Below, piece by piece: positions 1-58,450 of a stretch of 64,000 bases of DNA (within the stretch, counting starts at the first letter, position 1; every line of letters starts with the position of its first letter). Position numbers and translations under genes: made by a program. The stretch covers positions 2,728,001 through 2,792,000 of the forward strand of contig CATNEN010000005.1 in assembly GCA_950097015.1 (NCBI GenBank). The letters are read 5' to 3'. The notes below the pieces were generated by a model. The model did not search any database. It saw nothing but the letters and a program-made list of their open reading frames with translations, and was not told where the DNA came from. Source of the DNA: Macrostomum hystrix (taxonomy: Eukaryota; Animalia; Platyhelminthes).

Positions 1-3000
1 CGTTTTTAACAACATGTTTTGGGATTCCTTTTGATTTTTTAATGGTAGACTTACAACTTTTTACAAAATAGGACTTTGCCCTCAAACCGATAAACTCTGT
101 AATGAGGGTGCCAGCCGTTTCATCCTTCATTTTTCCTACAACTTTTTGATTTCCAGTGTCGCGTACTTGATCACCTTTCAAAGTCTTGAAGGACTCTGGA
201 TATTCGGATAGGTCATACAGATGTTTTTGATTCAACATGTCCTGATAGACATCCTCAGTCTGTATGTTTAGAATTAGGGAGTCTGTGTCAGTATATAGAA
301 GTTTCAGTTGTTCACCATATTGCCGCTTCATGTCATAGAAGAATTTATACATCAGACGCTTCGACTCATCGAGTACAGTCACACCTGTGAATATCGGCTT
401 GCATAGGGTAACTTTAGTCTTATAGAACAGTATGGCACCCAAGTAATCATTAAAGATATGAAGCTCTTTGAAAGTGGGCTTTGATAAACTTGTCTGAATA
501 GTACCAGGCTCATAACAGGTAACGAGCTTCAGGTTCGTGCGGTTGCGTTCGTTTTCTAGGGTCTTGCCATAGACAGAGTTGTTTGCAAGCTTGAACAGGT
601 CCTTGTCAAAGCTGTTTGTTGCTTTAGTTCTAAACTGGGTGTTTTTTTCTATGTATGGCTTCATCCACGCTTCTTCTGTGAATGCGAGAGCCCTGTGAAC
701 TTTCGTGACCCTACAGCCTAGGGAGATAAAATACCGCAACAGTTTGTAGTGGATTTTATAGCGTGTCTTGTTCATGAGATTTTGTGTTAACTTTTTCACA
801 CGCTCTTTTTCTTTTTCAGATAGCTGCCAGCTTCCATCATTGTACTGGATTATCTTTGGACAGTTAATGTTCTCAGGGAAGGGGGCAAAGTCAGAAAAAT
901 TGTCGTGAAGTTCCCTTGGGATTTCAACATCAACTTCATAGATCGCAGGTATTGAAAAGTCGAGTTTATAAGTATCTAGCCACCTAAAATCTCTAACAGG
1001 TAAATCTTGGCTCATAGCCCAACCATAGAGGTTGTTGGCATCCAGATAAATGATGTAGTTTGAAGGCTTTTCTTTATCATAGTCTTCTAGATACGGATTG
1101 TTCGCCTTTGCATACCTATGGACACAAATAGAGATGCCACCTCTCTTAGATGAATCTATAAAGTTGTACATGTCTATGTCTGTAAGCAGCTCGATGTACC
1201 AGTTGGGATTTTGATCCCATTTCATTTTAAGCAATGATTCCCAACTGGTAGCAGGCAAAGACACATAATGAGCAGGGTCAAGACCATAAGCAGAGTACCA
1301 GGTCTTTCTAAAGGTTTCAAATACATCAGCTAGAAGAAAGACATCAGTCCAAAGGTAAAGCATGTGATAATCAAGAAAGTTTCGACAGTTAAAATGTTTG
1401 TAAACAGTCTGAGCATGCTCATAATCTTCATCAGAAATCCCAGAGTTTGTTAGCTTTGAAAAGAACTTGTCCTTGGGTGGTAGTGGTTCTGCAAAGACGT
1501 GATTACATTCATAAGGGTAGACACCTTTCTTTCTAAGAAACTTAAATGAATCTGGGGTTCTAGGATTGAGGGAATCTGCCAGCATCTTGGTATAAGTACA
1601 TTGGTCATCGGTGAGATTTTTACTCAAAGCATCGAGACTGGCGGCCAGAAACTGGAATGAATCTTTGATCTTAATCTTGCCTGAATCTCGCTTAATATCA
1701 ATGCACTTGAACTTTTCTTTGTTCTCTGCGATGCAATCTAGTTTAATGCCTGGTATCATACCCAGCTTCTCAACCAATAAGTGATAATCATATCCCCTTC
1801 CGTTATGGAAGAAAACGGTAAGGTCGCGGATGTTTTTCTGAAGTTTCAGATTACAGGTGTTATGAGCTGCCCCTCTAAATTTTCCTGTGAAGTGATCGTG
1901 GTCTCTGACTGTGTGGTTTTTGACGTCGCAGGGTGTTAATAGCTTTCGGCAAATGTGACAATGAGTTGCAGATCCGAAGTCGATTTCATCTTGATCGGAC
2001 ATAATTATTTGAACAGGCTGAATGGCAGCAACATTTTTCTGTAATTCCATCATCGAGTAAATGAATTGTTCAACACACTGGTCACCTAAGAAATAGTTTG
2101 AGCAAATAAAAGAGTCTCTTCCAATAAAGAGATACGCAACAGAATTTGGGACATGCTTATTGGTTTCAGGGTTTATAGTGCATTCAAAGTCAGCGTATAC
2201 TATAAACGGGAGCTTCTCCATCTTGTGATAACTCTTAAATCTGAGATGCTTATCCGTTGGAAGTGTGCAGTTGGTTGGATGATCTTCACAGGTCAGTTCA
2301 TGCTCTTTAAGTTTTTCATCACGATCGGGTCCACTATAATGCTTCAGACAAAGACGACAGATTGCTACCGATTCATGATGATTGTTCATTTGCTTGTGGA
2401 GGAGCCTGGAAAGATCTTTAATCCAAACGTAGTGGGCATTTTCTCGCAAATCACCTATGATTAGAAGATCGACATCTATGCGACGCCTACCTTCAGGATC
2501 TAGCGTGTTTTTACTGGCTCTGACTAATTGTACTTTTTCGCTCTTCTCATTCCATTCAAAGACTGTGATTCTGATTTTATTGTTAAATACTTCCTCTAGC
2601 TTTGGGATTTGATCGATTGCCAAGCCGCCTCTATTGAAGGAAATTCCTTTAGCACGGCATTCTAAAAGTTTTGCGTCAAAATACATTTTATAATGAGAAG
2701 TTCTCTCTGGGTGGGCTTGATCTTTCTCATACAATATTGCAGACAGAACGGCCCATAGTGCGCAGCATTGGTCATCATTTTGCACATTGATGCAAGCTTT
2801 TTTACTCGCTAGCTTTTTCGGGAGCTCAATATATGATGAAGCTTTGAGAGGGTCATATTTCATGATCATTACTGTAGCTTTTTGAATGCCATTGACAACC
2901 CAACCTGATCCTCTGGAAGTAAAGGCGTCAATCTTTTTACTGATCTCTTGAAGAAAGGGATCCTGTGTGTCAGTGGGAGTAAAGGGTAGAGCTTTAGTAG

Positions 3001-3601
3001 TCATGTAGTATTCAAGACGCTCAGTGGGTTTTGCAGGCATGTAAAATTCTATCTTGAATGATAACTGAAGCTTGAAGGTCTTACGTGACTTCAGTGTGTG
3101 ATCAATTACTGATTGAATTCTGTCTTTGAAGTCGTAAATGTCGGATTGGGAATTTGTGGTGTCTTCCTGTATTGTGTACTCAATATAATACTCTGTGAAT
3201 TTTCTCTGTGCAAATTTAAGGTCTTCAGTTTGTAGCTCTACTTGTAGCTCTGCTTCAACCTGGTGGATTGTACGTTCTAGATCTTCTTGCTCTTGCTTAT
3301 TCTGTGGGTATTTCAACACATTTTGACCTGTGAGTGTCTCATACTTATTGACTAAGCTGCGGCTCTTTTGTTGATGCTCAGCTGCAGGGTTCATCACGGG
3401 TGTGTACTGCTCTGAATGCAGAAGCTGATTAATAATTTCTTGCATCTTTGCATAGCTCCCGAGGTAGCCTGGATCTGTATTGAATTTCTGCCTGCAAAGC
3501 TCTTGCAAAACTTTACTTTTCTGCTGAAAAGAAGAGGCTTGAGGACAATAATTTTGAAAGAAAGATTCGACAAATTTTTTTTCTGGAATTGCTTTAGGCA
3601 T
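1..3601 (-). CDS. Protein-primed family B DNA polymerase (pPolB), 3' end beyond window start, >1200 aa
   Basis: ATG at 3601. Hand translation gave these motifs, all in one frame: GSGW...SSYIELP...CINVQNDD, ExoI VYADFE (~2200), ExoII FFHNGRGYD (~1810), motif A YLDANNLYGWAM (~1045), motif B KLANNSVYGKT (~590), motif C YTDTDS (~295). No stop seen in the segments translated. Absent from the ORF track, probably because the stop is outside the window. Confidence 0.95.
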   Translation of the reverse strand, partial: MPKAIPEKKFVESFFQNYCPQASSFQQKSKVLQELCRQKFNTDPGYLGSYAKMQEIINQLLHSEQYTPVMNPAAEHQQKSRSLVNKYETLTGQNVLKYPQNKQEQEDLERTIHQVEAELQVELQTEDLKFAQRKFTEYYIEYTIQEDTTNSQSDIYDFKDRIQSVIDHTLKSRKTFKLQLSFKIEFYMPAKPTERLEYYMTTKALPFTPTDTQDPFLQEISKKIDAFTSRGSGWVVNGIQKATVMIMKYDPLKASSYIELPKKLASKKACINVQNDDQCCALWAVLSAILYEKDQAHPERTSHYKMYFDAKLLECRAKGISFNRGGLAIDQIPKLEEVFNNKIRITVFEWNEKSEKVQLVRASKNTLDPEGRRRIDVDLLIIGDLRENAHYVWIKDLSRLLHKQMNNHHESVAICRLCLKHYSGPDRDEKLKEHELTCEDHPTNCTLPTDKHLRFKSYHKMEKLPFIVYADFECTINPETNKHVPNSVAYLFIGRDSFICSNYFLGDQCVEQFIYSMMELQKNVAAIQPVQIIMSDQDEIDFGSATHCHICRKLLTPCDVKNHTVRDHDHFTGKFRGAAHNTCNLKLQKNIRDLTVFFHNGRGYDYHLLVEKLGMIPGIKLDCIAENKEKFKCIDIKRDSGKIKIKDSFQFLAASLDALSKNLTDDQCTYTKMLADSLNPRTPDSFKFLRKKGVYPYECNHVFAEPLPPKDKFFSKLTNSGISDEDYEHAQTVYKHFNCRNFLDYHMLYLWTDVFLLADVFETFRKTWYSAYGLDPAHYVSLPATSWESLLKMKWDQNPNWYIELLTDIDMYNFIDSSKRGGISICVHRYAKANNPYLEDYDKEKPSNYIIYLDANNLYGWAMSQDLPVRDFRWLDTYKLDFSIPAIYEVDVEIPRELHDNFSDFAPFPENINCPKIIQYNDGSWQLSEKEKERVKKLTQNLMNKTRYKIHYKLLRYFISLGCRVTKVHRALAFTEEAWMKPYIEKNTQFRTKATNSFDKDLFKLANNSVYGKTLENERNRTNLKLVTCYEPGTIQTSLSKPTFKELHIFNDYLGAILFYKTKVTLCKPIFTGVTVLDESKRLMYKFFYDMKRQYGEQLKLLYTDTDSLILNIQTEDVYQDMLNQKHLYDLSEYPESFKTLKGDQVRDTGNQKVVGKMKDETAGTLITEFIGLRAKSYFVKSCKSTIKKSKGIPKHVVKN

Positions 3602-3725
3602 TTTTAATAAAAATTTTATAAAAAAAATTTAGGGTGGTCACCCTCAAGTGAAGTGCAAAGTATGGCAAACTACTACCAACAGTGCTAAATATAGTTATGA
3701 GAGCAGATTCTGTTCTGTTCTGTTT

Positions 3726-4142
3726 TCACATCCGGAGTATTGTAAATCCTGCTTTATGCAGTGTCATGATGGCTTTAACGATTTCTGATTTGCTGACTTC
3801 ATCATCAGATTCACAACTACCCCCGATTCTGACTCCTTTTTCTCTAGCGATTTTCTCCATCTCTTGTTGATGTGCTCTGTCATTGCCAGCCTTCACAGCT
3901 GATGCAACTCCGCCGGCTACACCTCCTGCAGCACCAAGAGCACCTGCGATGATGGGGATAAGAGTTAGCAAAGGAAGAATCCCACCTGTCTTCTCATCAG
4001 TGATATTGTGCGTTTGATTGTTACAATGGATCATTTGCTGGATTGGATCTACTTTGACTTTGACACCTTTAATTGATACAACTCCTGGCTTCTTAGAGTC
4101 GATAATTCGGCTGATTTTATTCACGGTTCTGGTTTCAATCAT
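3726..4142 (-). CDS. Adenovirus pX-like (core/membrane-active) virion protein, 138 aa
   Basis: GGILPLLTLIPIIAGALGAAGGVA closely resembles the adenovirus pX C-terminus (GGILPLLIPLIAAAIGAVPGIA). AT-rich ...ATAAAATG start context like the neighbouring genes. Confidence 0.7.
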   Translation of the reverse strand: MIETRTVNKISRIIDSKKPGVVSIKGVKVKVDPIQQMIHCNNQTHNITDEKTGGILPLLTLIPIIAGALGAAGGVAGGVASAVKAGNDRAHQQEMEKIAREKGVRIGGSCESDDEVSKSEIVKAIMTLHKAGFTILRM

Positions 4143-4159
4143 TTTATTTTTAAAAAAAT

Positions 4160-5149
4160 TTAATTTATTTCTGTGTCATGTGGAATCACTAGAAGCTCAG
4201 CCCTTGTGAATGATCGTGTGGGGGCTTTTGAATTAAAGTCTTGGGATGGAAAATAGTAATCACCGGATGCTGATGTGAAATGCCTGTTTATCTTATGTAC
4301 ATCAAGACTAAAGTATGGGTCTGTTGCTCTTCTCTTTGTGTCCTTCTCCAGCTCTCCTGGTAAGTAAAGGAAGCGAACGAATTCAGAGTTAGTAAGAATT
4401 TCCGGAGAATAAACGCCAGGGAGCTTTGGATAGTTGAAATTGGCGATCGGATGTTTTGATTTAACTGTGTCTTGTTTGATGGCAGTATTTGGTTTCAGGT
4501 TTGTCATTCGAGATACTTCATTGTTCAGTTGACTTATTACTGCGGGGAGTCTTTCTGTCCACTTGGTATAGTATTGGCCACTTTTTAGTTTCAGCTCTTC
4601 AGCTGTCTGCTTTGTGAAAAGTCTCTTTGCTAGAGTTAGATTGAATCTTTCAACAAAAGCCTGGTCTCTATGGAGCTCAGTTCTTCCGTAGCGCATTTTC
4701 GTATTGTTCTTTTCCATAAGGGATTTGACTGCCCCCATGAATTCTTTGCCAGGATCAGTCATAAAGGTTTGGGGGTATGTGAGCGGTGAGTTTTTGTAAA
4801 TGTCTTGGAGGGCAGCTGCTACTGCTTCTGACTTCTTAGTCTTAAGCGGTCTCGCTTCCTTATATCTGGAGGCAATGTCTATAACTGTGAGAGCATACTT
4901 GTAGCCTGAGTCATTGGGGAGAAACAGAAGATCTGCTTGGTGCGCTTCATTAGGTTTATAGATGTTAAAGTGAGGTCTTGCAAATTTAACAGGTGGGAAA
5001 TAGACTTGGTAAACTGCTTGCTTAGAGAGCCATCTTTCAACTGTTTGTTTTGATTCATTACTTAGTTCCGCGAGTTTGGTGACTGCATTTTTTCCTACAA
5101 AGAATCCTTTGTCGCTGTAGTAGAGCTTTTGAAGTTTCTGATCTGTCAT
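4160..5149 (-). CDS. Retroviral-like (rve, DDE) integrase of the Polinton, 329 aa
   Basis: Catalytic triad in QADLLFLP, FMTDPGKEF and VERFNLTL; YALTVIDIASRY segment; intact ORF. No obvious C-terminal chromodomain. Confidence 0.95.
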   Translation of the reverse strand: MTDQKLQKLYYSDKGFFVGKNAVTKLAELSNESKQTVERWLSKQAVYQVYFPPVKFARPHFNIYKPNEAHQADLLFLPNDSGYKYALTVIDIASRYKEARPLKTKKSEAVAAALQDIYKNSPLTYPQTFMTDPGKEFMGAVKSLMEKNNTKMRYGRTELHRDQAFVERFNLTLAKRLFTKQTAEELKLKSGQYYTKWTERLPAVISQLNNEVSRMTNLKPNTAIKQDTVKSKHPIANFNYPKLPGVYSPEILTNSEFVRFLYLPGELEKDTKRRATDPYFSLDVHKINRHFTSASGDYYFPSQDFNSKAPTRSFTRAELLVIPHDTEIN

Positions 5150-5175
5150 TATTTTTTATTTAATTTTTTATAAAA

Positions 5176-5619
5176 ATGATGCAACGCTTTGGTGGAAACT
5201 TAGACTCACATGGACTGGTAGAAAAGCTTCCTCATCCAAACAAAGGCTGGACAATTCCCGGCTACAAATATTGCGGGCCTTTGAATCCACTTGAAATACA
5301 GCTAGATAAAAACAATAATCCAAATCCTGGGCATGAGCCCGTGAACGAGCTAGACTCTGTCTGTATGTGGCATGATATTAAGTATAGGGATTTTCCAGAG
5401 GAGAAGACTCGCTGGGACAAAGAAATGCTCAGAATGCTAGACAATATGGGGGCTTCAAGCGGGTGGAGGGAATCGATCGCTCGGAAACTAGTTAAAGCTG
5501 TTATTTTTGGTAAGGCAAAGTTGGGGTTGGGGATTGGTGGGGTGGGCTTTGTATTGCATGCTCCAAGTAAAGAACTTGGAGCTCTGCTGAAAGAGCTGGG
5601 GGTTGAGAGAGCAGAATGA
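5176..5619 (+). CDS. Parvovirus VP1u-type phospholipase A2 domain protein (PLA2X-like), 147 aa
   Basis: PGYKYCGPLN Ca-binding loop and DSVCMWHDIKY catalytic HD motif, followed by RWDKEML. C-terminal KLGLGIGG motif. Confidence 0.85.
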   Translation: MMQRFGGNLDSHGLVEKLPHPNKGWTIPGYKYCGPLNPLEIQLDKNNNPNPGHEPVNELDSVCMWHDIKYRDFPEEKTRWDKEMLRMLDNMGASSGWRESIARKLVKAVIFGKAKLGLGIGGVGFVLHAPSKELGALLKELGVERAE

Positions 5620-5896
5620 TTCAAGCAAGCAAGATAAGCGACATGGCTAATCCTATACAGCGACCTCAAAATTCTGGGTAACAACACAGCCTTGCAGCAG
5701 AAGACCTTTCGTATGTGTTTTTAACTAATCCTATGCAACAATACAAAACAGCCGCAACAGAAACAGCTGGTTTCCGGGTAAGCGGCCCGCTTTTTCTCCC
5801 CCAAATTTGCTTTTTCACTCACCACGCAGAACAACTCCTAGCCACTCCGTTTTATTCTACGCTCTACCGAGCTCATTTTCTATTTTAGTCAAACTA

Positions 5897-6155
5897 CCAC
5901 CTCTGAAAATGAAACCGTTGGTTTCAAATTTTGAGGTGGGTGAATTGAATCCTGCACTGTTCCAACAACCACCTCAGAAAATGAAACCGTTGGTTTCAAA
6001 TTTTGAGGTGGGTAAATTGAATCCTGTACTGTTCCAACAACCACCTCAGAAAATGAAACCGTTGGTTTCAAATTTTGAGGTGGGCAATCAAAATGGCATA
6101 CATGTGAAACAACCACCCTAGAAAATGAAACCAGTGGTTTCGAAATTTGAGGTGG
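5897..6155. repeat. Array of four 43-bp imperfect palindromes separated by 29-bp spacers (72-bp period)
   Basis: CCACCTCAGAAAATGAAACC-GTT-GGTTTCAAATTTTGAGGTGG at 5897, 5969, 6041 and 6113; 17 of 20 arm positions pair. Spacers 1 and 2 differ at 2 positions; spacer 3 is largely different. Confidence 0.95.
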
Positions 6156-6158
6156 GTG

Positions 6159-6809
6159 TCAATTATGTTGTAAGTCAATTAAGTCAATTAAGTCTTCGTC
6201 TTCGTCCACTTCCTGTTGCAGCTTCACCAGGGCCTCTGGCAGGTATGCTATCATCGACTTCAGCTTGTGTAGGGACATTGCAGATCTTAGTAGCACCGGA
6301 TATTTCTCAGCCTGGTCAGCCAATTTCATCAGAAAGTTGGTCCACTGGCTGGTGAACGGCGCACGTCTTTTCAACTCGTTGAACTGTTCCTTAGAGAGAA
6401 CCCGCTCCATTCGCAGAAAGATCCTGCCGAGCTGTAGGCCGTTTGCAAAGCCTTGCTTACCACGCCGTTCAACTAGTTTATTAAGGTTGGCGATCTGTGT
6501 AAGCACCGCTTCGATCTGGAATGTGCCCTGCGCAAATTCTTGTGGAGAATGCTCAGGCACATGCTCACCGTTGACCTTGTAGGCCTTGCGCAACTCGTCC
6601 AGAGTCTTGTTGATTTGCGATTGCTTGTCGGCAGTTTTAGCTAGCCGATTGATTATAGTTGGTTTCGCGATGGGTGTCCGAGCAATTGCATTATATTTAT
6701 CGACCCAAACATTCCAATTGTCAAGATCTTTACTAGAAAAAACTGCCTTGATGAATTTCTCCAGATTTTCGATGTAAACGATGTCGCCTGCTGGCATTTC
6801 AACATCCAT
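6159..6809 (-). CDS. Polinton orphan protein, 216 aa, mostly helical; possible DUF3102-like HTH in the C-terminal half
   Basis: Intact ORF with TATAAAAA about 75-85 bp upstream (~6886-6893). LQLGRIFLRMERVLSKEQFNELKRRAPFTSQWTNFLMKLA loosely recalls the G-x2-L...F...S...M-x-LA pattern of DUF3102 as remembered; unverified. Confidence 0.6.
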   Translation of the reverse strand: MDVEMPAGDIVYIENLEKFIKAVFSSKDLDNWNVWVDKYNAIARTPIAKPTIINRLAKTADKQSQINKTLDELRKAYKVNGEHVPEHSPQEFAQGTFQIEAVLTQIANLNKLVERRGKQGFANGLQLGRIFLRMERVLSKEQFNELKRRAPFTSQWTNFLMKLADQAEKYPVLLRSAMSLHKLKSMIAYLPEALVKLQQEVDEDEDLIDLIDLQHN

Positions 6810-7063
6810 TGCAAGTTCCAGAGATTAGGCAGTTAAAAAAATAAGAAGTTCCTGCGTGCTCTGGGTGAATCACGTAACATGCTCTTTTTTATAAGGCCGA
6901 CCATAAAACTCCAACAAGGAACTTCTTTTTCTTTGGGTTGAGAACGGAGAGGAGAGAAATGTGTCTCGTTCACTCTAAATTCCTTTCCCGAGAGCACCAA
7001 CCAAAACTCAAACTAGGAGTTGTGAGTACTCCACAGAGAATCGATCGTTAGTCGAAAAAAAAC

Positions 7064-7300
7064 TTACAATTGCTTAATGATTTCTGCAAAGTTATAGTAG
7101 CTGTCGTAGTCCTTTATAATTGCTCCATACTTATGAAACCAGTGACTCTTGACTGATAGATTAATATTAGGGACATTGATATCGACGTTGGGACAATATT
7201 TCTTCATGTACTCGCTGCATTCTTTTTTGCATTGGTACTTACTCTTGTAATTAGGCTCATGACTTTTGTAATAAGATCCTGGAGAGACGATTGGGAGCAT
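7064..7300 (-). CDS. Small Polinton ORF (78 aa from ATG 7300), unknown function
   Basis: Start context TTATTAAAAATG is identical to that of PolB; Tyr/Lys/Cys-rich. Confidence 0.5.
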   Translation of the reverse strand: MLPIVSPGSYYKSHEPNYKSKYQCKKECSEYMKKYCPNVDINVPNINLSVKSHWFHKYGAIIKDYDSYYNFAEIIKQL

Positions 7301-7339
7301 TTTTAATAAGAATTTAATTTTTTTTCGGAGGATGAGCAC

Positions 7340-7755
7340 CCAAGGTTTGGGGTCTTGATTGGGATTTTAGTGCTAATTTGATTGTCTTGGCACGCTTTTT
7401 GCAGCTTCGCTATTTTGTGCATGATCTCTTAGGGAGTGGCTGCGATAATTTTTTTTGTCCAAGATGTGCAACTCACAAACTGGAAAGTATTTTTTTTTGG
7501 CGGGGGAACCTTGTTCCTTCAGGAAAGGTAATGGTTTGTGCATTAAGGAGGCTGCGATAATTTTTGTCCTAGATATTCAACTTACAAACTGATGTGGGAT
7601 ATTAAAAGTAGAGAATTTAGAATACGGAGACGGAGTTTTTAGAGGGGCGGGGACCCTTTTTTTCCTGATCTCTTCGGGAATAATAAAAGTAATGGTTTGT
7701 GGATAATGGAGGCTGCGATTATTTTTGTCCTAGAAGCCCCCTCTTGCATACTACT
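7340..7755. repeat. Probable terminal inverted repeat region of the Polinton, with internal sub-repeats
   Basis: Three copies of GGCTGCGAT(A/T)ATTTTT(T)GTCC(A/T)AGA at 7438, 7550 and 7711, two preceded by GTAATGGTTTGTG. Ends in TACTACT. The partner TIR is not in the window. Confidence 0.6.
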
Positions 7756-8305
7756 CACCTCAGACCTGACAATCGACGAAATTTGCCAGCCCGGCAACAT
7801 CCCATGGCTCGTTCCGTTCCTCTTGGCGACAAGACAAGCCACGTTTTTCCCGACCGAAGACAACGCTGCAGGACTGACCGGCGGACCTCCCTGGATGAGC
7901 ACCCTTGGCTCCACCATCATCACTGACGATCGCCTGTCTGAGGGACTACAGAGGTTAGGGGTAATGGGCGACTCTCGCCTCCCCGCTGTCAACCTACAGC
8001 TAAGTCAAGTAACTCAAAGTGCCTCTGCCGACGCCAATTCAAGAAAGTTATCTCAGACTCCGGAAGCGTGACAGTTAAATGGCATTTTGCTAGCGATAGA
8101 CAGGTGGTGTCCCCCTGGTTTGGTCTGCTATGTACGTGTGTGTGGGCCTGGGGTGAGTGAGAGGCACTCCGGCTGCCGCCCCCTTCTCCGCTTGGCTTGC
8201 TGCTGTGTGTGAGGTGCCTGAGTTCAGGTGTCCAGATGGCGACTCCCGCCTAGTTCCTGGGCTTGGGCGTCAAGTGCCCCAGGCCCCCTGCAAATAAGTA
8301 AGTTA
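7756..8305 (+). mobile_element. Possible 3' fragment of a non-LTR retrotransposon into which the Polinton inserted
   Basis: GC-rich. Open frame LTIDEICQPGNIPWLVPFLLATRQ resembles LINE ORF2 C-termini, and the segment ends in AAATAAGTAAGT like a (TAAG)n tail. Weak support. Confidence 0.25.
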
Positions 8306-8966
8306 TGCCAGTACTATCAGTGGGCACTCATGCGATCACTCTAAGACATGGCGAGTGGTCTTCTCTCTCGACGGCAGGAACGTAAACCCACATCGTGACG
8401 CGGCGCATTAAGACTATCATCCAACCGACAAAGGACATTGTCGAAGACTACGCCCATGAATGTGCTGCCGTAAATTGCCTGCCGAACGACCACTTGCAGG
8501 ATGATGCACGCCGCGAAAAGTATCGCCAACCCAAAAGCAGAGGTTCCCGCGAGATAGGCCTAAATTGTGCCCCAACTGCCGATCCTGAAGAATTAAAACG
8601 AAACGGCCGACGAGATAGGCGCCATACCAGCCAATTAGCCTTCACTTCGACCGTGGCCAAGTGATAGCCGGCGACTATATTTTAGGGCCAGCGAGACTTA
8701 TTGAAGGTTCAAATCGAGGTTTTTCCTAAATGAGCTTTTCTCCCAGGAATTTTTCTCGCAGGTTTACCTGTCCCATTTTTTAAGAAATTTTACAGCGACT
8801 GAACTGAAGCATTAGGTCGTAATCAAATGTCTTTTATGCTCCAAGGATATAAAACTGTATTATTAACTTCATTTTGGGTTCAGATTCACTCGAATGAATT
8901 CTCCCGGTCAGAAGCCGAGCTAACAAGAACCGAAGCTAATATCGCACACGTAAGTCAAGAGAAGTA

Positions 8967-9918
8967 CGAGGTGCATTCAAAAAGTTATTTTCGGTGCTCA
9001 GCAAAAATTAACAAAAATTGTATGGAACAATGAAAACATGGTTAGGTCATTCAATGTCATTCGGTCACTCAACATATTCACCGCCAATGTCCTTGCACTT
9101 CTGCCAGCGATGCACCAGACCTCTGATTCCAGTACCCACGCCTATCGCGTCCGTTTCACGCACCGCACCTTGGCAAGCAGCTTTGATGTGCTCGACGCTG
9201 TCGAATCGAATGCCCCGAAGGTGCTTCTTCACAGATGGGAATAGGAAGAAGTCACATGCAGGGTGACAAATCGGGCGAGTAGGGCGGACGAAAGAAAATT
9301 CTCTCCTTCTCGCTGGAAACGGCGCAGGTGGTTGGTGGCGGCCAGAGCACGTTGCATCTTCTGCTCACCTGTCAGCAGGTGTGGCACCCACTTGCTGAAT
9401 TTCTTCTGCAGGTTGAGACGCTCTGTCAGAATGGTGTGTACACTGCCAACTGACACTCCGACATCTTCTGACAGCTCTTCGCAAGTCAGTCGCCGATCAT
9501 CATCCAGGAGCTCCTGCACTTTCTTCACCACGGTCTCGTTGGTGGCAGTCATCGATCTTCCAGAGCGGTCGTTGTCCTCGACGCTCTTTCTGCCTTCAGC
9601 GAACAACAGGAACCACTTTCGAACAGTCTGTTCAGTTGGTGCACTGTCACCAAACACTTGCTGAAGCTCTCTAAACATCTCCGGAGGTTTCTTTCCTTGC
9701 AGGAATTGGAACTTCATCAAGCTCCGAACGTCTTGCTTTGAAAAAGATTCTGCCATGGCCAAGAAATAGAAGGGTAGCTTAAAAAATTGCTTGTAGCTCA
9801 GACAGTCACCAGCTAAGGCTTAAAAACTCAGGAAGGTTTAGGCCACAAATTTTGTTCTGTGTGTCATTTACAAAACAATGCCAAAGGACCGAAAAGAACT
9901 TTTTGAATGCACCGATCG
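8967..9918 (-). mobile_element. Internally deleted mariner (Tc1/mariner) DNA transposon
   Basis: TA-flanked TIRs CGAGGTGCATTCAAAAAGTT / AACTTTTTGAATGCACCGATCG (2-bp insertion in the right TIR). Transposase N-terminus with HTH, RSGR and WVPHLL (9762-9290) is fused out of frame to PPYSPDLSP..DFFLFP..RWQKC..GEYVE*. The region with the first two catalytic Asp is deleted. Confidence 0.93.
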
Positions 9919-12609
9919 TAGATGTGAATTAGGGCAACTGAAAACAATGTTTCATATCCCCTGCGTAGTTAGGAAATTATTTGACTAAAAGGATAAGCTT
10001 CCCGTGCGTAGAAAGAATATGGGGCATGCATGCAGTTTGACCTACTGGGATCGGGTGCACAGCGGACATTCGTTCGGAGCCAGGACAGGACAAGAGAGGC
10101 CACAGCAACCCCTTTCACCATCGTTATATTGACTGTATCCCCAGCACCCGAATGTACTCGCGTTCGCTTATTGCGTTTTGCTGCGAATGGACGAACGCGT
10201 GGATTCGTATAATCACGTGTGCACTTTTTATTTTCGTTTGCTGCGGAGAGGAATCTAATATGAAGCCTCTAGCTGGCGATCCATTGGAAAGGGAGGCGGA
10301 ATACCAAGTTTGGGAAAAAATCTCGCGTACCTTCATTAAGCAGAGTGCAATGAGGACGAGCCGCTGCAGTGCAGCATTTCGAGATCGCTTCATCAGCATG
10401 GCATCAGCGGATGCCGTGTGTAGCCGTCGTCGGCGCAGTCAGTCTTGGTGCGGTGCTCGATGCTGTCTTGGACCATTGGAGCAGGGCCTCTGCTGCGACT
10501 CCCGGCGCCAGCTGTACCAACTGAACCGGCTGGCCAGACGTCGCATTATTCAGTTCCAGAGCAAGCGTCAGATTTCTCTCAACAGAGCCGAAGCGAGTCA
10601 TCCGGAGTCGCAGCCTAATTGGTTAGCATGACATGTTGCTAAGCAACGAATAGGAAAACGCCAGGGAGGCTGCTGCCAGTGGGTCGACATGGAGAATACT
10701 TTGGGGACCTGATCTAACATAACATCGGAACATGAGAAATTCAGTAAAGTATTCCGCTGAAATGAACTATGTATAAATAAGGGAAATTGCAGATCGAACT
10801 TCCCGCCTGTAAATATTGTCATAAAAAGCAAAAGATACCTTTCGATACAAAGGTAACTTTCGCTCTCTTTACATTTAGTCCAAGCTTTATAAATTGATTT
10901 GATAAATAAATAAAAGGAACGATTCGATTTAATGCTGATTGAATGATTTTCTCTCTTTTGTTCTTGATAGCCGCGCAATTTATCTGCGACAGATAAGTTT
11001 GAAATGCAACTGTGTAATTAGTGTTCTGGATTATCTTTGTTTGAAATAAAATGTTTGCCCTCTGGCGGCAAGGCCTGATACTTATTACCAGCTCGAACAC
11101 AACAGTCAGTGTGAGCTATACGTGCGAACAAAGTCAAAATGGTCAGTAGAACTCCCGATTAAAGGGGCCGGCCGGTGGCTTCGGCCCAAGATTGTTTATT
11201 CCAATGCTCCCGCGGCGATCGTCCTAGCTTGGACCCCAGGGTGCGCGATCTCGAAGGGTTGGCCTATACAGAAATCTCGCCGGGTCGCGCTCTAGCTGTG
11301 ATTGGCCGGTACGTGCCCTCTCAGGTTCAGGCCAAATCAGGTCAAATCACTAAAGTACGCTACGCAACAATGACTAAAGCAGTTGACCTAGAATTCAAAC
11401 GAGCAAAAAGTAGCTCACACTACAACGCTATTTAATAAGTATCTGCTATGTGTGACAGTTTAAGAAATCGATATATGGTCCCTGTATATTGGGAATTATA
11501 TTGCACAAACAAAATGCATTACGGGAGTGTTTTATTGATATAGAGATTTCTGAACCACTTCTGGGACACTTTATTCCTGATTGCATCGCTTCAGACGTAG
11601 TACCAACAGTTATAAGTTGCAGATCTTTAAAATCTTTAAAATCTTGCAAATCTCTGCAATTGCAGATTTGTTTAGTTGCAGCTGGGTAGAATTTCTGGCG
11701 GTTGCATGTAGCGCGTACGTTAGTCCGTGGACTCAACATCGATCTGTATGCGCCAATTACATTCACCATGCAGTAGCTAAATCTGTGATATGTTCTGATG
11801 CTGTATATTTTACAAGATTTCCGGATCGTGCAGCCACACTGTGTATTTTTTTCCATCCGTGTATTTTACAGATGGATTTTTCCATCCGCAATTTTTTGAT
11901 AAACACGGAAAAATCAAAGCCAAAGCACCAAGTGTCCAAAAAATAATTTTTCGACTTCAATAATTAGCAGTTCTGTTTTAGATAATGCAATAAGGTATCA
12001 ACAAGCTGCTTAACAACCACTTAGGTAAAGTGCTGTTTGTTTATTTAAAGCTTCCCTTACCTCAAACAAAAAACAATTTTAAATTCCTAAATTATCCGTG
12101 TGCTATAATAGCGAGCGATAATATAATAATATAAATACCGAGCTACGGAGCTTGCTTCCTCAAGCAGAATTTCTGGTAGAATTACTTCGCGCCGTAAAGG
12201 TATCGGACCCTAGGGTAGGAAAGCCTTTTTCCCTTGACACCATTCTATTGCCATTAAAATCAAGTGATTAAAAATTTTATTTTAACTTCATATCATATTT
12301 AAGTAGAATGTTGAAAATTGGGTTGAGCTATGATAGAATACAATCTATATAAAAATTGACAAGGCTTTTTGGTCTTGATTCTATTGTTGTTTAGTTTTAA
12401 AAAGCCATGAACCGCTAGTAATTCTATATTGACTGACCAGTTGGGAATGTTAGTAGGCCTAAGATTGTCAGAGGGTTTAGTCCAGATACAAATGACCTGA
12501 AAGTGACATTTTTTTAATAGGGGCATGTCCAATTTAGATTTACTATGTAACTTGTAATTTGTGACATTCATTGAGGTCTGTATGCTATATTTTTTAATTA
12601 TATTAAATC

Positions 12610-15140: not shown

Positions 15141-18100
15141 ATGGAATACGGTGACTCACTAACAGCCAATGATCAGGTGCAGATTGACTTTCATGGCATC
15201 GAACTAAATGGCCTCAATGGAGCTGGCATTGGTCATGGCTCCAGTGAATTTGCTGCTGAACAATTTCCTGGACTAGAAGAGCGGGAAATAATGACCGAAT
15301 TAGGTGTTCCACTAAGGGTCTATGTTCACAAGGGCAGCAAGTGCTGTGGATCTATCATTACCTATCACGACTTGGGTACGAATCGTAAGTAATTTAATTT
15401 TCATGCCATCAATCAGATTGGTGGTAGTTACTATGGATCTAGTATGGTTGCAATCACAAAATGAGGATCTGGGGTGGTTGCAATCCCAAACTGAGGATCT
15501 GAGATTGTTGCAATCCCAATCTGAGGATCTGAGATTGTTGCAATCCCAATCTGAGGATCTGAGATTGTTGCAATCCCAATCTGAGGATCTGAGATAGTTG
15601 CAATCCCTATCTGAGGATCTGAGATAGTTGCAATCCCTATCTGAGGATCTGAGATTGTTGCAATCCCTATCTGAGGATCTGAGATTGTTGCAATCCCAAT
15701 CTGAGGATCTGAGATTGTTGCAATCCCAATCTGAGGATCTGAGATTGTTGCAATCCCTATCTGAGGATCTGAGATTGTTGCAATCCCTATCTGAGGATCT
15801 GAGATTGTTGCAATCCCAATCTAAGGATCTGAGATTGTTGCAATCCCAATCTGAGGATCTGAGATTGTTGCAATGCCAATCTGAGGATCTGAGATGGTTG
15901 CAATCCCAAACTAATGATCTGGGATGGTTGCAATCCCAATCTGAGGATCTGAGATTGTTGCAATGCCAATTTGAGGATCTGGGATGGTTGCAATCCCAAT
16001 CTGAGGATCTGAGATTGTTGCAATGCCAATCTGAGGATCTGAGATTGTTGCAATCCCAATCTGAGGATCTGAGATTGTTGCAATGCCAATCTGAGGATCT
16101 GAGATTGTTGCAATCCCAATCTGAGGATCTGAGATTGTTGCAATGCCAATCTGAGGATCTGAGATTGTTGCATTCCCTATCTAAGCATCTGAGATAGTTG
16201 CAATCCCAATCTGAGGATCTGAGATTGTTGCAATCCCAATCTGAGGATCTGAGATTGTTGCAATGCCAATCTGAGGATCTGAGATTGTTGCAATCCCAAT
16301 CTAAGGATCTGAGATTGTTGCAATCCCAATCTGAGGATCTGAGATTGTTGCAATGCCAATCTGAGGATCTGAGATGGTTGCAATCCCAAACTAATGATCT
16401 GGGATGGTTGCAATCCCAATCTGAGGATCTGAGATTGTTGCAATGCCAATTTGAGGATCTGGGATGGTTGCAATCCCAATCTGAGGATCTGAGATTGTTG
16501 CAATGCCAATCTGAGGATCTGAGATTGTTGCAATCCCAATCTGAGGATCTGAGATTGTTGCAATGCCAATCTGAGGATCTGAGATTGTTGCAATCCCAAT
16601 CTGAGGATCTGAGATTGTTGCAATCCCAATCGGAGGATTAAAGAAGGTTATCAGAATCCAAGTTGATCATATTAACAGTTCGGTCTCTGAACTGATTTCA
16701 AACTAAAAAGGTTTCTACAAAGCGCCTTACCTGATATTAATTTAGATCGCTCATTTCTAAGATTCTTCAATCAACCTGACATGCGTGTCATCATGGACTA
16801 TTTCACTGTCTATCACGTGTGCGCCCCAGGACATCACGACACTGCCGGGCCAGTGGCTTCTGAGTGAGTCTGTTTGATTTATAAAAAACTATCAAGATGA
16901 TAGTTTTTGTTAGGTAGCTGGCAGAGAACAGTTTAGCAACAGAAGTTAATTAATGATCATATTATCGTTTCCATTAAATTCAACATAGGGTTATTGTCTC
17001 CGATGACCCAGAAGGGTAAGTAGCACAATAGATTATATTTTTAGTTTGATAGCATTGCCTAATATGTCTAACATTTAGCGGTGAGATTGTGTGCTCAAAT
17101 CAAATTGTGTCACTTAATCGCTTGCAGTTTTTTTACTTTTGTAACGGAAAATTTTAAAAGGCTATTAGACACGCCAATATGTTGTTTCTAATCTAAGCAA
17201 TGTGCATAATTATTATTTATTAGCCTGCTTTTATTTATCAACGGTCATAGACTCCACAGTTGGATCAGTTATTGTATCCATGATCAGTCATTGTATCCAT
17301 GATCAGTCATTGTATCCATGATCAGTTATTGTATCCATGATCAGTCATTGTATCCATGATCAGTTATTGTATCCATGATCAGTCATTGTATCCATGATCA
17401 GTCATTGTATCCATGATCAGTCATTGTATCCATGATCAGTCATTGTATCCATGATCAGTCATTGTATCCATGATCAGTCATTGTATCCATGATCAGTCAT
17501 TGTATCCATGATCAGTCATTGTATCCATGATCAGTTATTGTATCCATGATCAGTCATTGTATCCATGATCAGTCATTGTATCCATGATCAGTCATTGTAT
17601 CCATGATCAGTCATTGTATCCATGATCAGTCATTGTATCCATGATCAGTTATTGTATCCATGATCAGTCATTGTATCCATGATCAGTCATTGTATCCATG
17701 ATCAGTCATTGTATCCATGATCAGTTATTGTATCCATGATCAGTCATTGTATCCATGATCAGTTATTGTATCCATGATCAGTCATTGTATCCATGATCAG
17801 TCATTGTATCCATGATCAGTCATTGTATCCATGATCAGTCATTGTATCCATGATCAGTCATTGTATCCATGATCAGTCATTGTATCCATGATCAGTCATT
17901 GTATCCATGATCAGTCATTGTATCCATGATCAGTCATTGTATCCATGATCAGTCATTGTATCCATGATCAGTCATTGTATCCATGATCAGTCATTGTATC
18001 CATGATCAGTCATTGTATCCATGATCAGTCATTGTATCCATGATCAGTTATTGTATCCATGATCAGTCATTGTATCCATGATCAGTCATTGTATCCATGA

Positions 18101-21100
18101 TCAGTCATTGTATCCATGATCAGTCATTGTATCCATGATCAGTCATTGTATCCATGATCAGTCATTGTATCCATGATCAGTTATTGTATCCATGATCAGT
18201 TATTGTATCCATGATCAGTTATTGTATCCATGATCAGTCATTGTATCCATGATCAGTTATTGTATCCATGATCAGTCATTGTATCCATGATCAGTCATTG
18301 TATCCATGATCAGTCATTGTATCCATGATCAGTTATTGTATCCATGATCAGTCATTGTATCCATGATCAGTTATTGTATCCATGATCAGTCATTGTATCC
18401 ATGATCAGTCATTGTATCCATGATCAGTCATTGTATCCATGATCAGTCATTGTATCCATGATCAGTCATTGTATCCATGATCAGTCATTGTATCCATGAT
18501 CAGTCATTGTATCCATGATCAGTCATTGTATCCATGATCAGTTATTGTATCCATGATCAGTCATTGTATCCATGATCAGTCATTGTATCCATGATCAGTT
18601 ATTGTATCCATGATCAGTTATTGTATCCATGATCAGTTATTGTATCCATGATCAGTTATTGTATCCATGATTAGTCATTGTATCCATGATCAGTCATTGT
18701 ATCGATGATCAGTTATTGTATCCATGATCAGTCATTGTATCCATGATCAGTCATTGTATCCATGATCAGTTATTGTATCCATGATCAGTTATTGTATCCA
18801 TGATCAGTTATTGTATCCATGATCAGTTATTGTATCCATGATCAGTTATTGTATCCATGATCAGTTATTGTATCCATGATTAGTCATTGTATCCATGATC
18901 AGTCATTGTATCCATGATCAGTTATTGTATCCATGATTAGTCATTGTATCCATGATCAGTCATTGTATCGATGATCAGTCATTGTATCCATGATCAGTCA
19001 TTGTATCCATGATCAGTCATTGTATCCATGATCAGTCATTGTATCCATGATCAGTCATTGTATCCATGATCAGTCATTGTATCCATGATCAGTCATTGTA
19101 TCCATGATCAGTTATTGTATCCATGATCAGTCATTGTATCCATGATCAGTCATTGTATCGATGATCAGTCATTGTATCCATGATCAGTCATTGTATCCAT
19201 GATCAGTTATTGTATATATGATCAGTCATTGTATATATGATCAGTCATTGTATCCATGATCAGTCATTGTATCCATGATCAGTCATTGTATCCATGATCA
19301 GTTATTGTATCCATGATCAGTTATTGTATCCATGATTAGTCATTGTATCCATGATCAGTCATTGTATCGATGATCAGTCATTGTATCCATGATCAGTCAT
19401 TGCATCCATGATCATTCATTGTATCCATGATCAGTCATTGTATCCATGATCAGTCATTGTGTTCACTATCAGTCTTCGTATCCATGAACGATCACTGTAT
19501 CCTTTATCAGTCATTGTATCCATGATCAGTCACCGTATCCATGAGCAGTTACTGGGTCCATGATAGGTCATTGTATCTATGATCAGTCATTGTATCTATG
19601 ATCAGTCATTGTATCCATTACCAGTCATCGTATCCATGATCGGTCATTGTGTCCATGACCAGTCATTGTATCCATGATCAGTCATTGTATCCATGATCAG
19701 TTATTGTATCCATGATCAGTTATTGTATCGATGATCAGTTATTGTATCCATGATCAGTCATTGTATCTATGATCATTCATTGTATTCATTATCAGTCATT
19801 GTATCCATGATCAGTCATTGTATCCATGATCAGTCATTGTATCCATGATCAGTTATTGTATCCATGATCAGTCATTGTATCCATGATCAGTCATTGTATC
19901 CATGATCAGTCATTGTATCCATGATCAGTTATTGTATCCATGATCAGTCATTGTATCCATGATCAGTTATTGTATCCATGATCAGTCATTGTATCCATGA
20001 TCAGTTATTGTATCGATGATCAGTCATTGTATCCATGATCAGTCATTGTATCCATGATCAGTCATTGTATCCATGATCAGTCATTGTATCCATGATCAGT
20101 CATTGTATCGATGATCAGTCATTGTGTCCATGACCAGTCATTGTATCCATGATCAGTCATTGTATCCATGATCAGTTATTGTATCCATGATCAGTTATTG
20201 TATCGATGATCAGTTATTGTATCCATGATCAGTCATTGTATCTATGATCATTCATTGTATTCATTATCAGTCATTGTATCCATGATCAGTCATTGTATCC
20301 ATGATCAGTCATTGTATCCATGATCAGTTATTGTATCCATGAGCAGTCATTGTATCCATGATCAGTCATTGTATCCATGATCAGTCATTGTATCCATGAT
20401 CAGTTATTGTATCCATGATCAGTCATTGTATTCATGATCAGTTATTGTATCCATGATCAGTCATTGTATCCATGATCAGTTATTGTATCGATGATCAGTC
20501 ATTGTATCCATGATCAGTCATTGTATCCATGATCAGTCATTGTATCCATGATCAGTCATTGTATCCATGATCAGTTATTGTATCGATGATCAGTTATTGT
20601 ATCGATGATCAGTACAGCAAAGTTAGCACAATTTTGCTTGTTTAGTTAAAATTAAACGTGTATTGTGTATTATGATTTTATTTGAGACTTTATAATTTCA
20701 GGCATTATTTTAGTTTTTAATCGATAAAAAATCAAATGTCGACAATGGTGACGTAATACAATTTACAGTGGTGGAGTTCGTGAAGGTCTTCTTGGCTCCG
20801 GCGCAGCCGGTGCTGACGCTAGACGCGGCTCCTCGTCTACTAGCTACTCAATGTACGGACAGGGTCGAGGCAGTGTGTGAGTTTCCTAGTTTCTGACCTT
20901 GTGGTTTGATTGTCGGATTTAAAACTTAATGGTCGGGGGTTCGATTCCCGACTCCACTTGAATCGTTTTGTGTCCAAGACACTAATTTCCGTATTACTTT
21001 AGTTTATCCATGTCTAAAATGTTTGGCAGCATAAATTGGGCTTTCCGTGGACTGTACAGCGGCACAGCCGTAGGCAGCTTTTCATCCTAAACTTCCTGGA

Positions 21101-26658: not shown

Positions 26659-27878
26659 ATTTATTTCGATTACTTCATCTGTAATCGTTTTTAAGATCTA
26701 TCGTTTCACAGACCTTGACTCTTGTAATAAATTTTAGTGTATTATACATTTTGTGGGTATCTATTAAGATATTGTTGACTATACAATTATTAAAAATAGT
26801 ATGCATACTGTTAAATGTGGACTTCGATTTGAAATTCGATACTGTTAAATGGTTTTTGCTTGCTGGTCAAGCTGTGACTAAAAGTATATAAAGCCACTGA
26901 ATTTTTTTTTAATTTGTAATTGTCATTTCAGTGGAATGTGCTGTATTTCTAAATCTAAAAATAATTTTAAAAGTAATCTCTCCTTTGAACATTGTTACCT
27001 TTTAATTACTATACTGGAAAACAATACAGATTAGAACTTAAATTAAACAAGTTAAGCAAGTTGATGTATGTTTTTCCTTTCTCTAATCTGGAAATGTATG
27101 GGATGTTCATATTATTTACAACTTTAATTCACCTACATTTCATATTTAAATGACCAAACTTACTATTTGTATCACCCATAATGAGAAACTACAAACAATT
27201 ATTGCAGCTTGTAATTTCTAATATTTATTGCCTATTCCTGGCAGGACCAATGCTTCAAATAAAATAGTAACTACGAAAGGACTAGACTTTCCATAAACCT
27301 ACAAAATAGCAGTATGTACTGAAAGTCTGAAAGATTAATTTCATATTTTTTGTTTTTCCCTCATCTGTAAAAATGAAACATTTTTTTAAAGATCTAGCTA
27401 GATCAAAATAAATATTTAAGTCTCATACACTTTTGAAAAATAAATTTATTTTTTTATTTAGGAAAGTCTAATTTTGGATGCCAGATGCTTGTTATTTAAT
27501 TTCTGGCTAAAATAGTTCTTGAAATCAGTTTTTTCATCTAGATAGGTCGAGTAGTGTGTCAATGTTAAATTTATTTAACTGTGCCCTGCCAAATGAAACA
27601 TAAAAAACACTATGGGATGTTTCTGACAACAACTCCCTAGTTTTTTTAAACCAAAACTTGCATACTACTAGTCACTACTGGCTGCTGAGTAGCTGAAATA
27701 AGTGCATAAAAATTTATTCCCATTGAATCTCGGCTCCTACAAAAGCTTACTCGTATTTGTCCAGGCTTTGAGTAATATATGCTCGTTTTTATCTGTTGCC
27801 GATAGTCAATACAACTAGCGATACGAGGTCTCATAGTAGTATCGTACTGTTACTTAGGTTACTTAATAACAATTAAGA

Positions 27879-28195
27879 GGTTGTAGCCTAGTGGTTAGAG
27901 CGTCGGACTCACGATTTGAAGGTCGGGGGTTCGATTCCCGACTCCACTGAAACAATTTGTGTCCTTTAGCAAGACACTTAACTCTGCATTGCTTCAGTTC
28001 ACCCAGCTGTTAAATGGGTGCCAGCATTAGCTGGGATAATTGAGGGTGGGTGTGGCGTCCCCCCAGTCCATGGACTGAACAGCCGTATGCAGCCTTCAGA
28101 TGCGCCGCGCATTAGCTGCGGCTGTGCTGTCGGCTGCACATCTGACCCAATTAGGGCAGGTGTAATCAATTATCAATTATTATTAATAATAATAA
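27879..28195 (+). mobile_element. tRNA-derived SINE with CORE(MIR)-like central domain
   Basis: A box TAGCCTAGTGG (27884) and B box GGTTCGATTCC (27928). GTGTCCTTTAGCAAGACACTTAACTCTGCATTGCTTCAGTTCACCCAGCTGTTAAATGGG aligns by eye with the MIR core. AT-rich (TAA)n tail; near-identical copy at 63.2 kb. Confidence 0.85.
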
Positions 28196-55469: not shown

Positions 55470-56919
<1,450 letters not shown>

Positions 56920-58239: not shown

Positions 58240-58450
58240 CTTTAGGAAACGCATCGTTTCTGATTAAAATTTCCGATAAATTCAAAGAATCTTTCCAACA
58301 CTTTCCAAGAAACCTATGGTTTCTTTGAAAAGTTACGAGAAATTCTAAGAATCTTTCCAACACTTTCCGAGAAACCTAAGGTTTCTTTGAAAATTTACGA
58401 GAAATTCTAAGAATCTTTCCAGCAGATTCCAAGAAACCCATCGTTTCTAA
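58240..58450. repeat. 62-bp tandem repeat (~3.5 units) with four GAAAC(C/G)-N3-(G/C)GTTTC palindromes
   Basis: Palindromes at 58246, 58309, 58371 and 58433; GAATCTTTCC recurs at 58287, 58349 and 58411. Confidence 0.85.

Follow-up and report, generated by a model that had tools for sequence, protein, structure and literature searches.

A conserved palindromic unit accompanies the 3′ end of an orphan gene family in virus-like elements of animals

What could four evenly spaced palindromes be doing between two convergent genes of a Polinton? The question is raised by a 64,000-nucleotide (nt) stretch of the genome of the flatworm Macrostomum hystrix (assembly GCA_950097015.1, contig CATNEN010000005.1, forward-strand positions 2,728,001 to 2,792,000; hereafter the window, in whose numbering coordinates are given unless another locus is named). 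Here, a tandem array of 72-nt units, each containing a 43-nt palindrome, adjoins the stop codon of ORF216, an orphan gene for a protein of 216 amino acids (aa). Judged by comparison with relatives, the 43-nt unit belongs to the 3′ end of ORF216-family genes, with which it is inherited as a conserved cis-acting element in virus-like elements of animals, and it is selected for both its sequence and its dyad symmetry. The four-copy array, as distinct from the unit, is a local tandem expansion.

Architecture of the array

Tandem-repeat detection with TRF placed an array at 5892–6158, with a period of 72, 3.7 copies and 86% matches, and a repeat search resolved four 72-nt copies with start-to-start distances of 72, 72 and 72 nt. 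Its components, none of which has an assigned strand, are:

5889–6158, no strand: whole tandem array of four 72-nt units (TRF, repeat search, DNA fold z = −7.0)
5897–5939, no strand: palindrome unit 1; 20-nt arms and 3-nt loop, 16 Watson–Crick and one G·T of 20 pairs; DNA hairpin −13.1 kcal/mol, z = −5.95
5940–5968, no strand: spacer 1 (29 nt), 27/29 identical to spacer 2, without a match elsewhere
5969–6011, no strand: palindrome unit 2; 17 Watson–Crick and one G·T pairs, the same sequence as unit 3
6012–6040, no strand: spacer 2 (29 nt), a near-duplicate of spacer 1
6041–6083, no strand: palindrome unit 3; 17 Watson–Crick and one G·T pairs, identical to unit 2, yet followed by an unrelated spacer
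6084–6112, no strand: spacer 3 (29 nt), 13–15/29 identical to spacers 1 and 2
6113–6155, no strand: palindrome unit 4, the edge copy; 13 Watson–Crick and three G·T pairs, 36–37/43 identical to the other units

The sequence-only reading that drew attention to this locus had described four 43-nt palindromes with 20-nt arms, a 3-nt loop, an invariant core and an exact 72-nt period; all of this holds, except that the arms are imperfect, with 13–17 of 20 positions forming Watson–Crick pairs. Two A·A mismatches are common to all four units. The core, GAAACC-N3-GGTTTC, is exact in every unit; at no more than one mismatch it occurs eight times in the window against 0.24 expected, and the 20-nt arm pattern, with seven matches against 0.00 expected in the window, is confined to the array. 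Within each half of the palindrome, GAAACC/GGTTTC forms the inner and CCACC/GGTGG the outer block, and both arms carry conserved blocks; the loop, with three different triplets, is free in sequence, as are the spacers. Folded as DNA, the stretch 5880–6170 reaches z = −7.0. As RNA, the units form stable hairpins on either strand (−17.5 to −25.5 kcal/mol); those on the ORF216 sense strand are weaker than their antisense counterparts, G·T positions turning into C·A there.

The spacers keep their length of 29 nt despite the differing sequence of spacer 3, as had been claimed. This third spacer has just its first base and its last five bases in common with spacers 1 and 2, while the palindromes of units 1–3 are 42–43/43 identical (Fisher p ~2e-7 for palindrome versus spacer identity). 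Units 1 and 2 with their spacers, identical at 69/72 positions, are a recent 72-nt duplicate. The earlier state therefore had three palindromes separated by two spacers that were unrelated but equally long. This amounts to one independent comparison, and at n = 1 the proposed selection on geometry is not supported. Unit 4 is the best match to the copy found in Macrostomum lignano (see below) and ends 3 nt short of the ORF216 stop codon; it is decaying without compensation.

Two reading frames cross the array: the minus-strand frame of ORF216 stays open past its stop through the whole of 5890–6158, and a plus-strand frame (5807–6121) is open across three units. A coding role was rejected and both frames were taken as chance, because both differences between spacers 1 and 2 are non-synonymous and the proteins of relatives end where ORF216 ends.

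Two weaker traces of the unit lie between the array and the PLA2-like gene on its left:

5650–5673, no strand: stretch 79% complementary to the right arm and flank of units 1 and 2, ~40 nt past the PLA2-like stop (repeat search; weak)
5760–5774, no strand: solo degenerate core copy with one mismatch, between the PLA2-like gene and the array; hairpin no better than chance, fold z = −1.16

The former is possibly a decayed half unit. Among the 27 tandem arrays in the window, only two have a palindromic unit. The other one, at 58245–58448, has three units with a period of 62, the same GAAACC-N3-GGTTTC core and 13-nt arms and is otherwise unrelated; one of its flanking copies has the apex pair altered on both sides (GAAACG...CGTTTC), and no ORF216-like remnant was found near it. 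A binding factor common to the arrays at 5889–6158 and 58245–58448 is possible.

The unit is conserved beside a distant relative of ORF216

The gene that ends at the array, together with two putative signals on its strand, is laid out as follows:

6159–6809, minus strand: ORF216, an intact orphan gene (216 aa); all-helical model, basic domain and acidic tail
5851–5856, minus strand: AATAAA, the sole canonical copy in 5550–6300, on the ORF216 strand and 40 nt past the far end of the array
6885–6893, minus strand: putative TATA-like box, read from the sequence, 76 nt upstream of the ORF216 ATG

If this AATAAA is used, the whole array would lie inside the 3′ untranslated region (UTR) of ORF216.

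The informative relative comes from Macrostomum lignano (assembly GCA_002269645.1, contig NIVC01002974.1, 64641–70955; locus L010), where an ORF216-like gene, 38–40% identical, is decayed and lies in pieces in more than one frame. This locus has no array and a single copy of the motif, exactly at (overlapping) the stop codon of the ORF216 relative. Positions 3311–3353 of L010 are identical to window positions 6124–6166 at 34/43 bases and align to each of the other units as well; the right arm alone accounts for 17/20 matches against 0.01 expected. Over 118 aligned codons, identity of the adjacent coding DNA is 51%, falling to 35% at third positions, as compared with 79% for the motif (binomial p 4e-9), and a run of 14 contiguous identical bases is shared across ~60% protein divergence. 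Both the inner 7-bp stem and the length of the 3-nt loop are kept in L010: none of the seven inner pairs is broken, and two of them are altered on both sides (CG to GC and CG to UA). The stretch still folds, with z = −2.6. The arm covariation that the sequence-only reading had asked about is present at two inner-stem pairs between the species and absent from the decay of unit 4 within the array. A weak second ORF216-like match in L010 turned out to be a reverse-transcriptase fragment and was discarded.

The surroundings of the motif in L010 differ from those in the window. The ORF216-like gene is flanked by a reverse-transcriptase fragment and by a primase-helicase gene (Prim-Pol, PriCT-2, D5_N) that is split over several open reading frames (ORFs) and begins after ~520 nt of AT-rich DNA past the motif. 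As the element in the window has a protein-primed DNA polymerase B (pPolB), the ORF216 family occurs with two different replication modules.

In a third and more distant family member (L011, 27% identical), an imperfect palindrome with 16-nt arms begins 7 nt past the stop codon, and two 45-nt copies of a repeat, 98% identical and spaced 57 nt, begin 14 nt past it, the contig ending with the second copy. The repeat is unrelated in sequence to the array in the window, and the presence of unrelated repeats at the same place indicates that the sequence of the site shifts along with divergence of the protein. In 3/3 ORF216-family members with DNA examined, a dyad-symmetric or tandem repeat lies 0–14 nt from the stop codon (3 nt in the window, overlapping in L010, and L011). 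In L011 the N-terminal-like and C-terminal halves of the family protein are two adjacent ORFs of 104 and 144 aa (29–783), which may represent one break or a real split. For the two closest relatives of ORF216 (P0136 and P0137), all three short contigs end 45–51 nt past the stop codon, which hints that assembly stopped at a repeat.

The motif is tied to ORF216 and not to the Polinton backbone

Relatives of the other genes give a different picture. The PLA2-like gene has relatives at 54–70% identity and the integrase at 60–73%, on contigs of less than 2.4 kb, and these keep the gene order PLA2, integrase, protein X. No match to the array or to ORF216 was found in the integrase/PLA2-block loci on these short contigs (L005, L007 and L008): past the PLA2-like gene, L005 has a 280-aa same-strand ORF after 16 nt, and in L007 and L008 the gene is followed by unrelated non-coding DNA over 227 nt. 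A similar array is also missing from L003 and L009, two complete-looking Polintons at a greater distance, as are homologues of PLA2 and ORF216. An exact search with the palindrome pattern (26 specified bases) returned 0 and 0 hits in viral and metagenome contigs, respectively. Since the integrase/PLA2 relatives are without the array and an ORF216 relative has the motif, the motif is tied to ORF216. As to whether related elements have the array, another point raised in the first description, the backbone relatives show none and L010 shows a single unit.

The integrase gene of L003 (10001–11371) is lengthened to 456 aa by a tandem duplication within it (two copies with a period of 357, 99% identical).

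The ORF216 protein

ORF216 has no Pfam family; no exact record was found, nor did a word search find relatives. A full HMMER search yielded five relatives, at 47%, 35%, 40%, 26% and 36% identity, and searches of viral and metagenome contigs gave none; in the alignment the C-terminal half of the family is conserved. The AlphaFold (AF2) model is all-helical, with a mean confidence (pLDDT) of 71.6, and neither fold searches in the PDB and BFVD nor a sequence search in the PDB gave anything below E 0.08. The conserved domain (residues 99–190) is basic, with a net charge of +9, and is followed by an acidic tail (residues 191–216, net −8) that is also present in three of four relatives.

A protein-bound DNA site or an RNA hairpin

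We favor, tentatively and with rather less than even confidence, the explanation that each unit is a dyad-symmetric site in double-stranded DNA for a dimeric, sequence-specific protein, perhaps the product of ORF216, whose basic helical domain and acidic tail would make it the likeliest partner. Side by side, the units would form a platform of several binding sites for transcriptional control of the flanking genes or for genome maintenance, working like the baculovirus hr/IE1 or other iteron/initiator pairs without belonging to those families. Consistent with DNA binding are the conserved blocks on both arms and the 14-base identical run across deep divergence; the co-inheritance of the unit with the basic, acidic-tailed ORF216, which lends support to the link with the adjacent 216-aa protein suggested at the outset; the both-sided changes in the inner stem, which are what would be expected of a dimer site co-evolving with its protein; and the different repeat in the most distant relative, L011. 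A hairpin scan of 1–7600 found such palindromes in this array alone; the remaining genes of the element have none after them, which speaks against a 3′-end signal of general use. Several observations weigh against a DNA site. The 72-nt period corresponds to 6.9 helical turns at 10.5 bp per turn, which is no whole number; no recognizable DNA-binding domain or fold was found in ORF216 in Pfam, the PDB or BFVD; and in L010 the outer left arm, which is coding DNA there, is out of register. The unit adjoins the stop codon in all three lineages, which would fit an RNA or 3′-end role at least as well, and the both-sided changes would fit a hairpin and a dimer site equally. Finally, conservation of the unit depends on one informative relative, L010, with a decayed copy.

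The main rival, which we regard as possible and on balance doubtful, places the function in RNA: as part of the ORF216 mRNA's 3′ UTR, the array would fold into one hairpin per unit, to be recognized by a processing enzyme or an RNA-binding protein, with possible roles in 3′-end formation, stability, translation control or small-RNA processing, and the palindrome could serve read-through transcripts of the PLA2-like gene too. The positions just described speak for it (3 nt past the stop codon in the window, overlapping it in L010, the first L011 repeat 14 nt past it), as do the region's sole AATAAA on the ORF216 strand just past the array and the TATA-like box upstream of the gene, the stability of the RNA hairpins on both strands, the survival of the 7-bp inner stem and its free-sequence 3-nt loop through two both-sided changes, and the folding that the L010 copy retains; palindromic 3′-end signals also have a precedent in Mimiviridae (PMC4402537). 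Against an RNA role, the hairpins are weaker on the very strand on which ORF216 would be transcribed, the 14 contiguous identical bases exceed what structure alone needs, such hairpins are missing from the other genes of the element, one hairpin would suffice and four are unexplained, and the stems are too short for canonical microRNA precursors. Rfam 15 gave nothing at gathering score for the array, its sub-threshold matches being generic hairpins and plant microRNA precursors only (19–30 bits versus gathering scores of 94–245).

Both a DNA site and an RNA hairpin could also act as single copies, with the four copies, the 72-nt period and the equal spacers a neutral by-product of slippage or unequal exchange. 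The abundance of tandem arrays in the window, the recent duplication of units 1 and 2 with their spacers, the lone unit in L010, the uncompensated decay of unit 4 and the single independent comparison behind the equal spacer lengths all agree with this. We nevertheless consider it improbable, since units 2 and 3 are identical palindromes beside unrelated spacers of the same length, unlike plain duplication, since at least two tandem units occupy this place in L011 as well, and since the three contigs of the two closest relatives hint at the same by ending where they do. That the whole array is a functionless, neutral minisatellite whose palindrome arose by chance is very improbable: although tandem repeats abound in the window and the integrase/PLA2 relatives have no array, the retention of the motif at the orthologous site in another flatworm, above the level of coding DNA and with both-sided stem changes, refutes this for the unit, in line with the sequence-only reading, and palindromic units occur in only 2/27 arrays. 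A CRISPR-like array with spacers taken from foreign DNA, a likeness raised at first by the repeat-spacer appearance and the fixed 29-nt spacers, can be set aside with near certainty. The element is eukaryotic, no Cas-like genes are among those scanned, the three spacers include a duplicate pair, and comparison of the spacers with the window and the relatives' loci gave nothing beyond random 8–12-mers.

Comparison with known systems

Repeated sites with their own binding protein are familiar from iteron and family-of-repeats systems, such as herpesvirus oriP-type repeats, plasmid iterons and parS next to parB. As in these systems, repeated dyad-symmetric sites here adjoin the gene of a small protein and are co-inherited with it, and the sequence of the site shifts as the protein diverges. 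Unlike them, ORF216 is without a recognizable DNA-binding fold, and the element has a protein-primed polymerase; in known systems such polymerases start at the termini.

The homologous regions (hrs) of one baculovirus, which act as origin and enhancer, are built of three to eight units of 64 bp that each contain an imperfect palindrome of 24 bp (PMC4535591). The likeness, compared by architecture only, is in tandem units of ~64–72 nt, an imperfect palindrome in each, few copies per array and a setting in an invertebrate double-stranded DNA virus-like genome. The palindrome here is longer (43 nt) and bipartite, and one array is seen in the visible 7.4 kb of the element, whereas hrs are dispersed at several places. 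The hr likeness drawn by the sequence-only reading is therefore upheld in architecture and not in dispersal, with only part of the element visible. Hrs are bound by IE1; no IE1-like match was found among the element genes scanned, and ORF216 is without detectable relation to any named protein.

Under the ‘hairpin rule’ of Mimiviridae (PMC4402537), a palindrome past the stop codon serves as a 3′-end signal and can be common to convergent genes. The array resembles this in having a hairpin-forming palindrome directly past a stop codon between convergent genes. The rule, by contrast, is genome-wide and involves viral enzymes in a cytoplasmic virus, whereas here there is one locus only, with four copies and arms conserved in sequence. 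With ordinary eukaryotic minisatellites the array shares head-to-tail units arising by local duplication, a decaying edge copy and the company of many other arrays; it departs from them in that the unit is kept across animal genomes above the coding level and that an identical palindrome stands beside an unrelated spacer.

The host element and its surroundings

The element that holds the array is a genuine Polinton, as the sequence-only reading had said, and is of adintovirus type. The part visible in the window amounts to 7.4 kb, in which all frames are intact (ORF216 included, pPolB being cut by the window):

1–3601, minus strand: pPolB, a frame of at least 1200 aa that begins with an ATG at 3601 and stays open up to the left edge of the window; cut by the window, unbroken
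3726–4142, minus strand: adenovirus protein-X-like gene, 138 aa (PF05829, E 1.2e-5), 47% identical to the gene that follows the integrase of L001
4160–5149, minus strand: rve integrase, 329 aa, intact (PF00665); 1264 relatives, the closest 60–73% identical
5176–5619, plus strand: PLA2-like gene, 147 aa (PF08398, E 1.4e-14), convergent with ORF216
7064–7339, minus strand: 91-aa ORF upstream of ORF216 on the same strand, without a family; its membership of the element is uncertain

The pPolB matches that of L009 in two pieces in one frame (tblastn E 1.6e-153), and the pPolB of the other complete-looking relative, L003, carries PF03175. The long open pPolB frame at the left end rules out the reading that the window holds a small Polinton fragment only. 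PLA2-like and protein-X-like genes are hallmarks of Alpha (Mayetiola-class) adintoviruses (PMC8502044); here they are two separate genes, with no fusion. The integrase and PLA2-like genes are divergent. The array was correctly placed between convergent genes: the PLA2-like stop is followed by 277 nt of non-coding DNA, the array, 3 nt and the ORF216 stop codon. Homologues of the ATPase and other genes of L003 and L009 were not found in the window, nor was any capsid, ATPase or protease homologue or any pair of terminal inverted repeats, the element being cut at the window's left end; the capsid, ATPase and protease genes and the termini may lie to the left of it.

To the right of the element, between the 91-aa ORF and a mariner-like block, 7420–7740 contains three loose copies of a ~125–170-nt repeat with a common 23-nt stretch, which could be the end region of the Polinton or host DNA. 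The mariner/Mos1-type transposase helix-turn-helix (HTH) domain at 9229–9762 (minus strand; PF17906, E 2e-11), right of the Polinton genes, belongs to a transposase that looks incomplete and lies in a GC-rich block (~8300–10700). Farther along are pieces of host genes, namely an Ndr-family exon (21502–21936), a BRCT-rich long ORF (39814–43912) and ATG8/GABARAP-like exons split by a minisatellite (55470–56919). Minisatellites in the window have periods of 3–200 nt and up to 176 copies (for example, 17263–20613, period 19), and some lie inside long ORF-like stretches. With its Ndr, BRCT and ATG8 exons, mariner-type HTH and 27 tandem arrays, the window is animal-like nuclear DNA. A weak Rfam tRNA match at 27877–27946 (plus strand; 32.3 bits, gathering score 29), uncalled by ARAGORN, may be a tRNA-derived repeat.

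Implications

Polintons and adintoviruses are known almost solely by their protein genes. The sequence-only reading knew of no such array for Polintons, and internal palindromes, tandem repeats and other cis-elements go unmentioned in surveys of adintoviruses (PMC8502044), vertebrate Mavericks (PMC8097293) and nematode Polintons (PMC10748475). A non-coding unit that is better kept than the adjacent gene, across animal genomes and two replication modules, offers a handle on the regulation or maintenance of such elements, and the orphan ORF216 family gains a testable partner. There is also a caution for annotation: the relatives' assemblies tend to break here, and such elements are easily lost from short contigs.

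Taken one step further, ORF216 might be a small DNA-binding protein for regulation or maintenance that, with the palindromic repeats as its own sites, makes up a self-contained cis/trans module moving between unrelated virus-like elements of animals; we hold this to be a speculative and rather unlikely extension. If true, no internal repeat element of a regulatory or replication type would have been described for Polintons/adintoviruses before this array, and the ORF216/repeat module would be an independently arisen functional analogue of the hr/IE1 pair.

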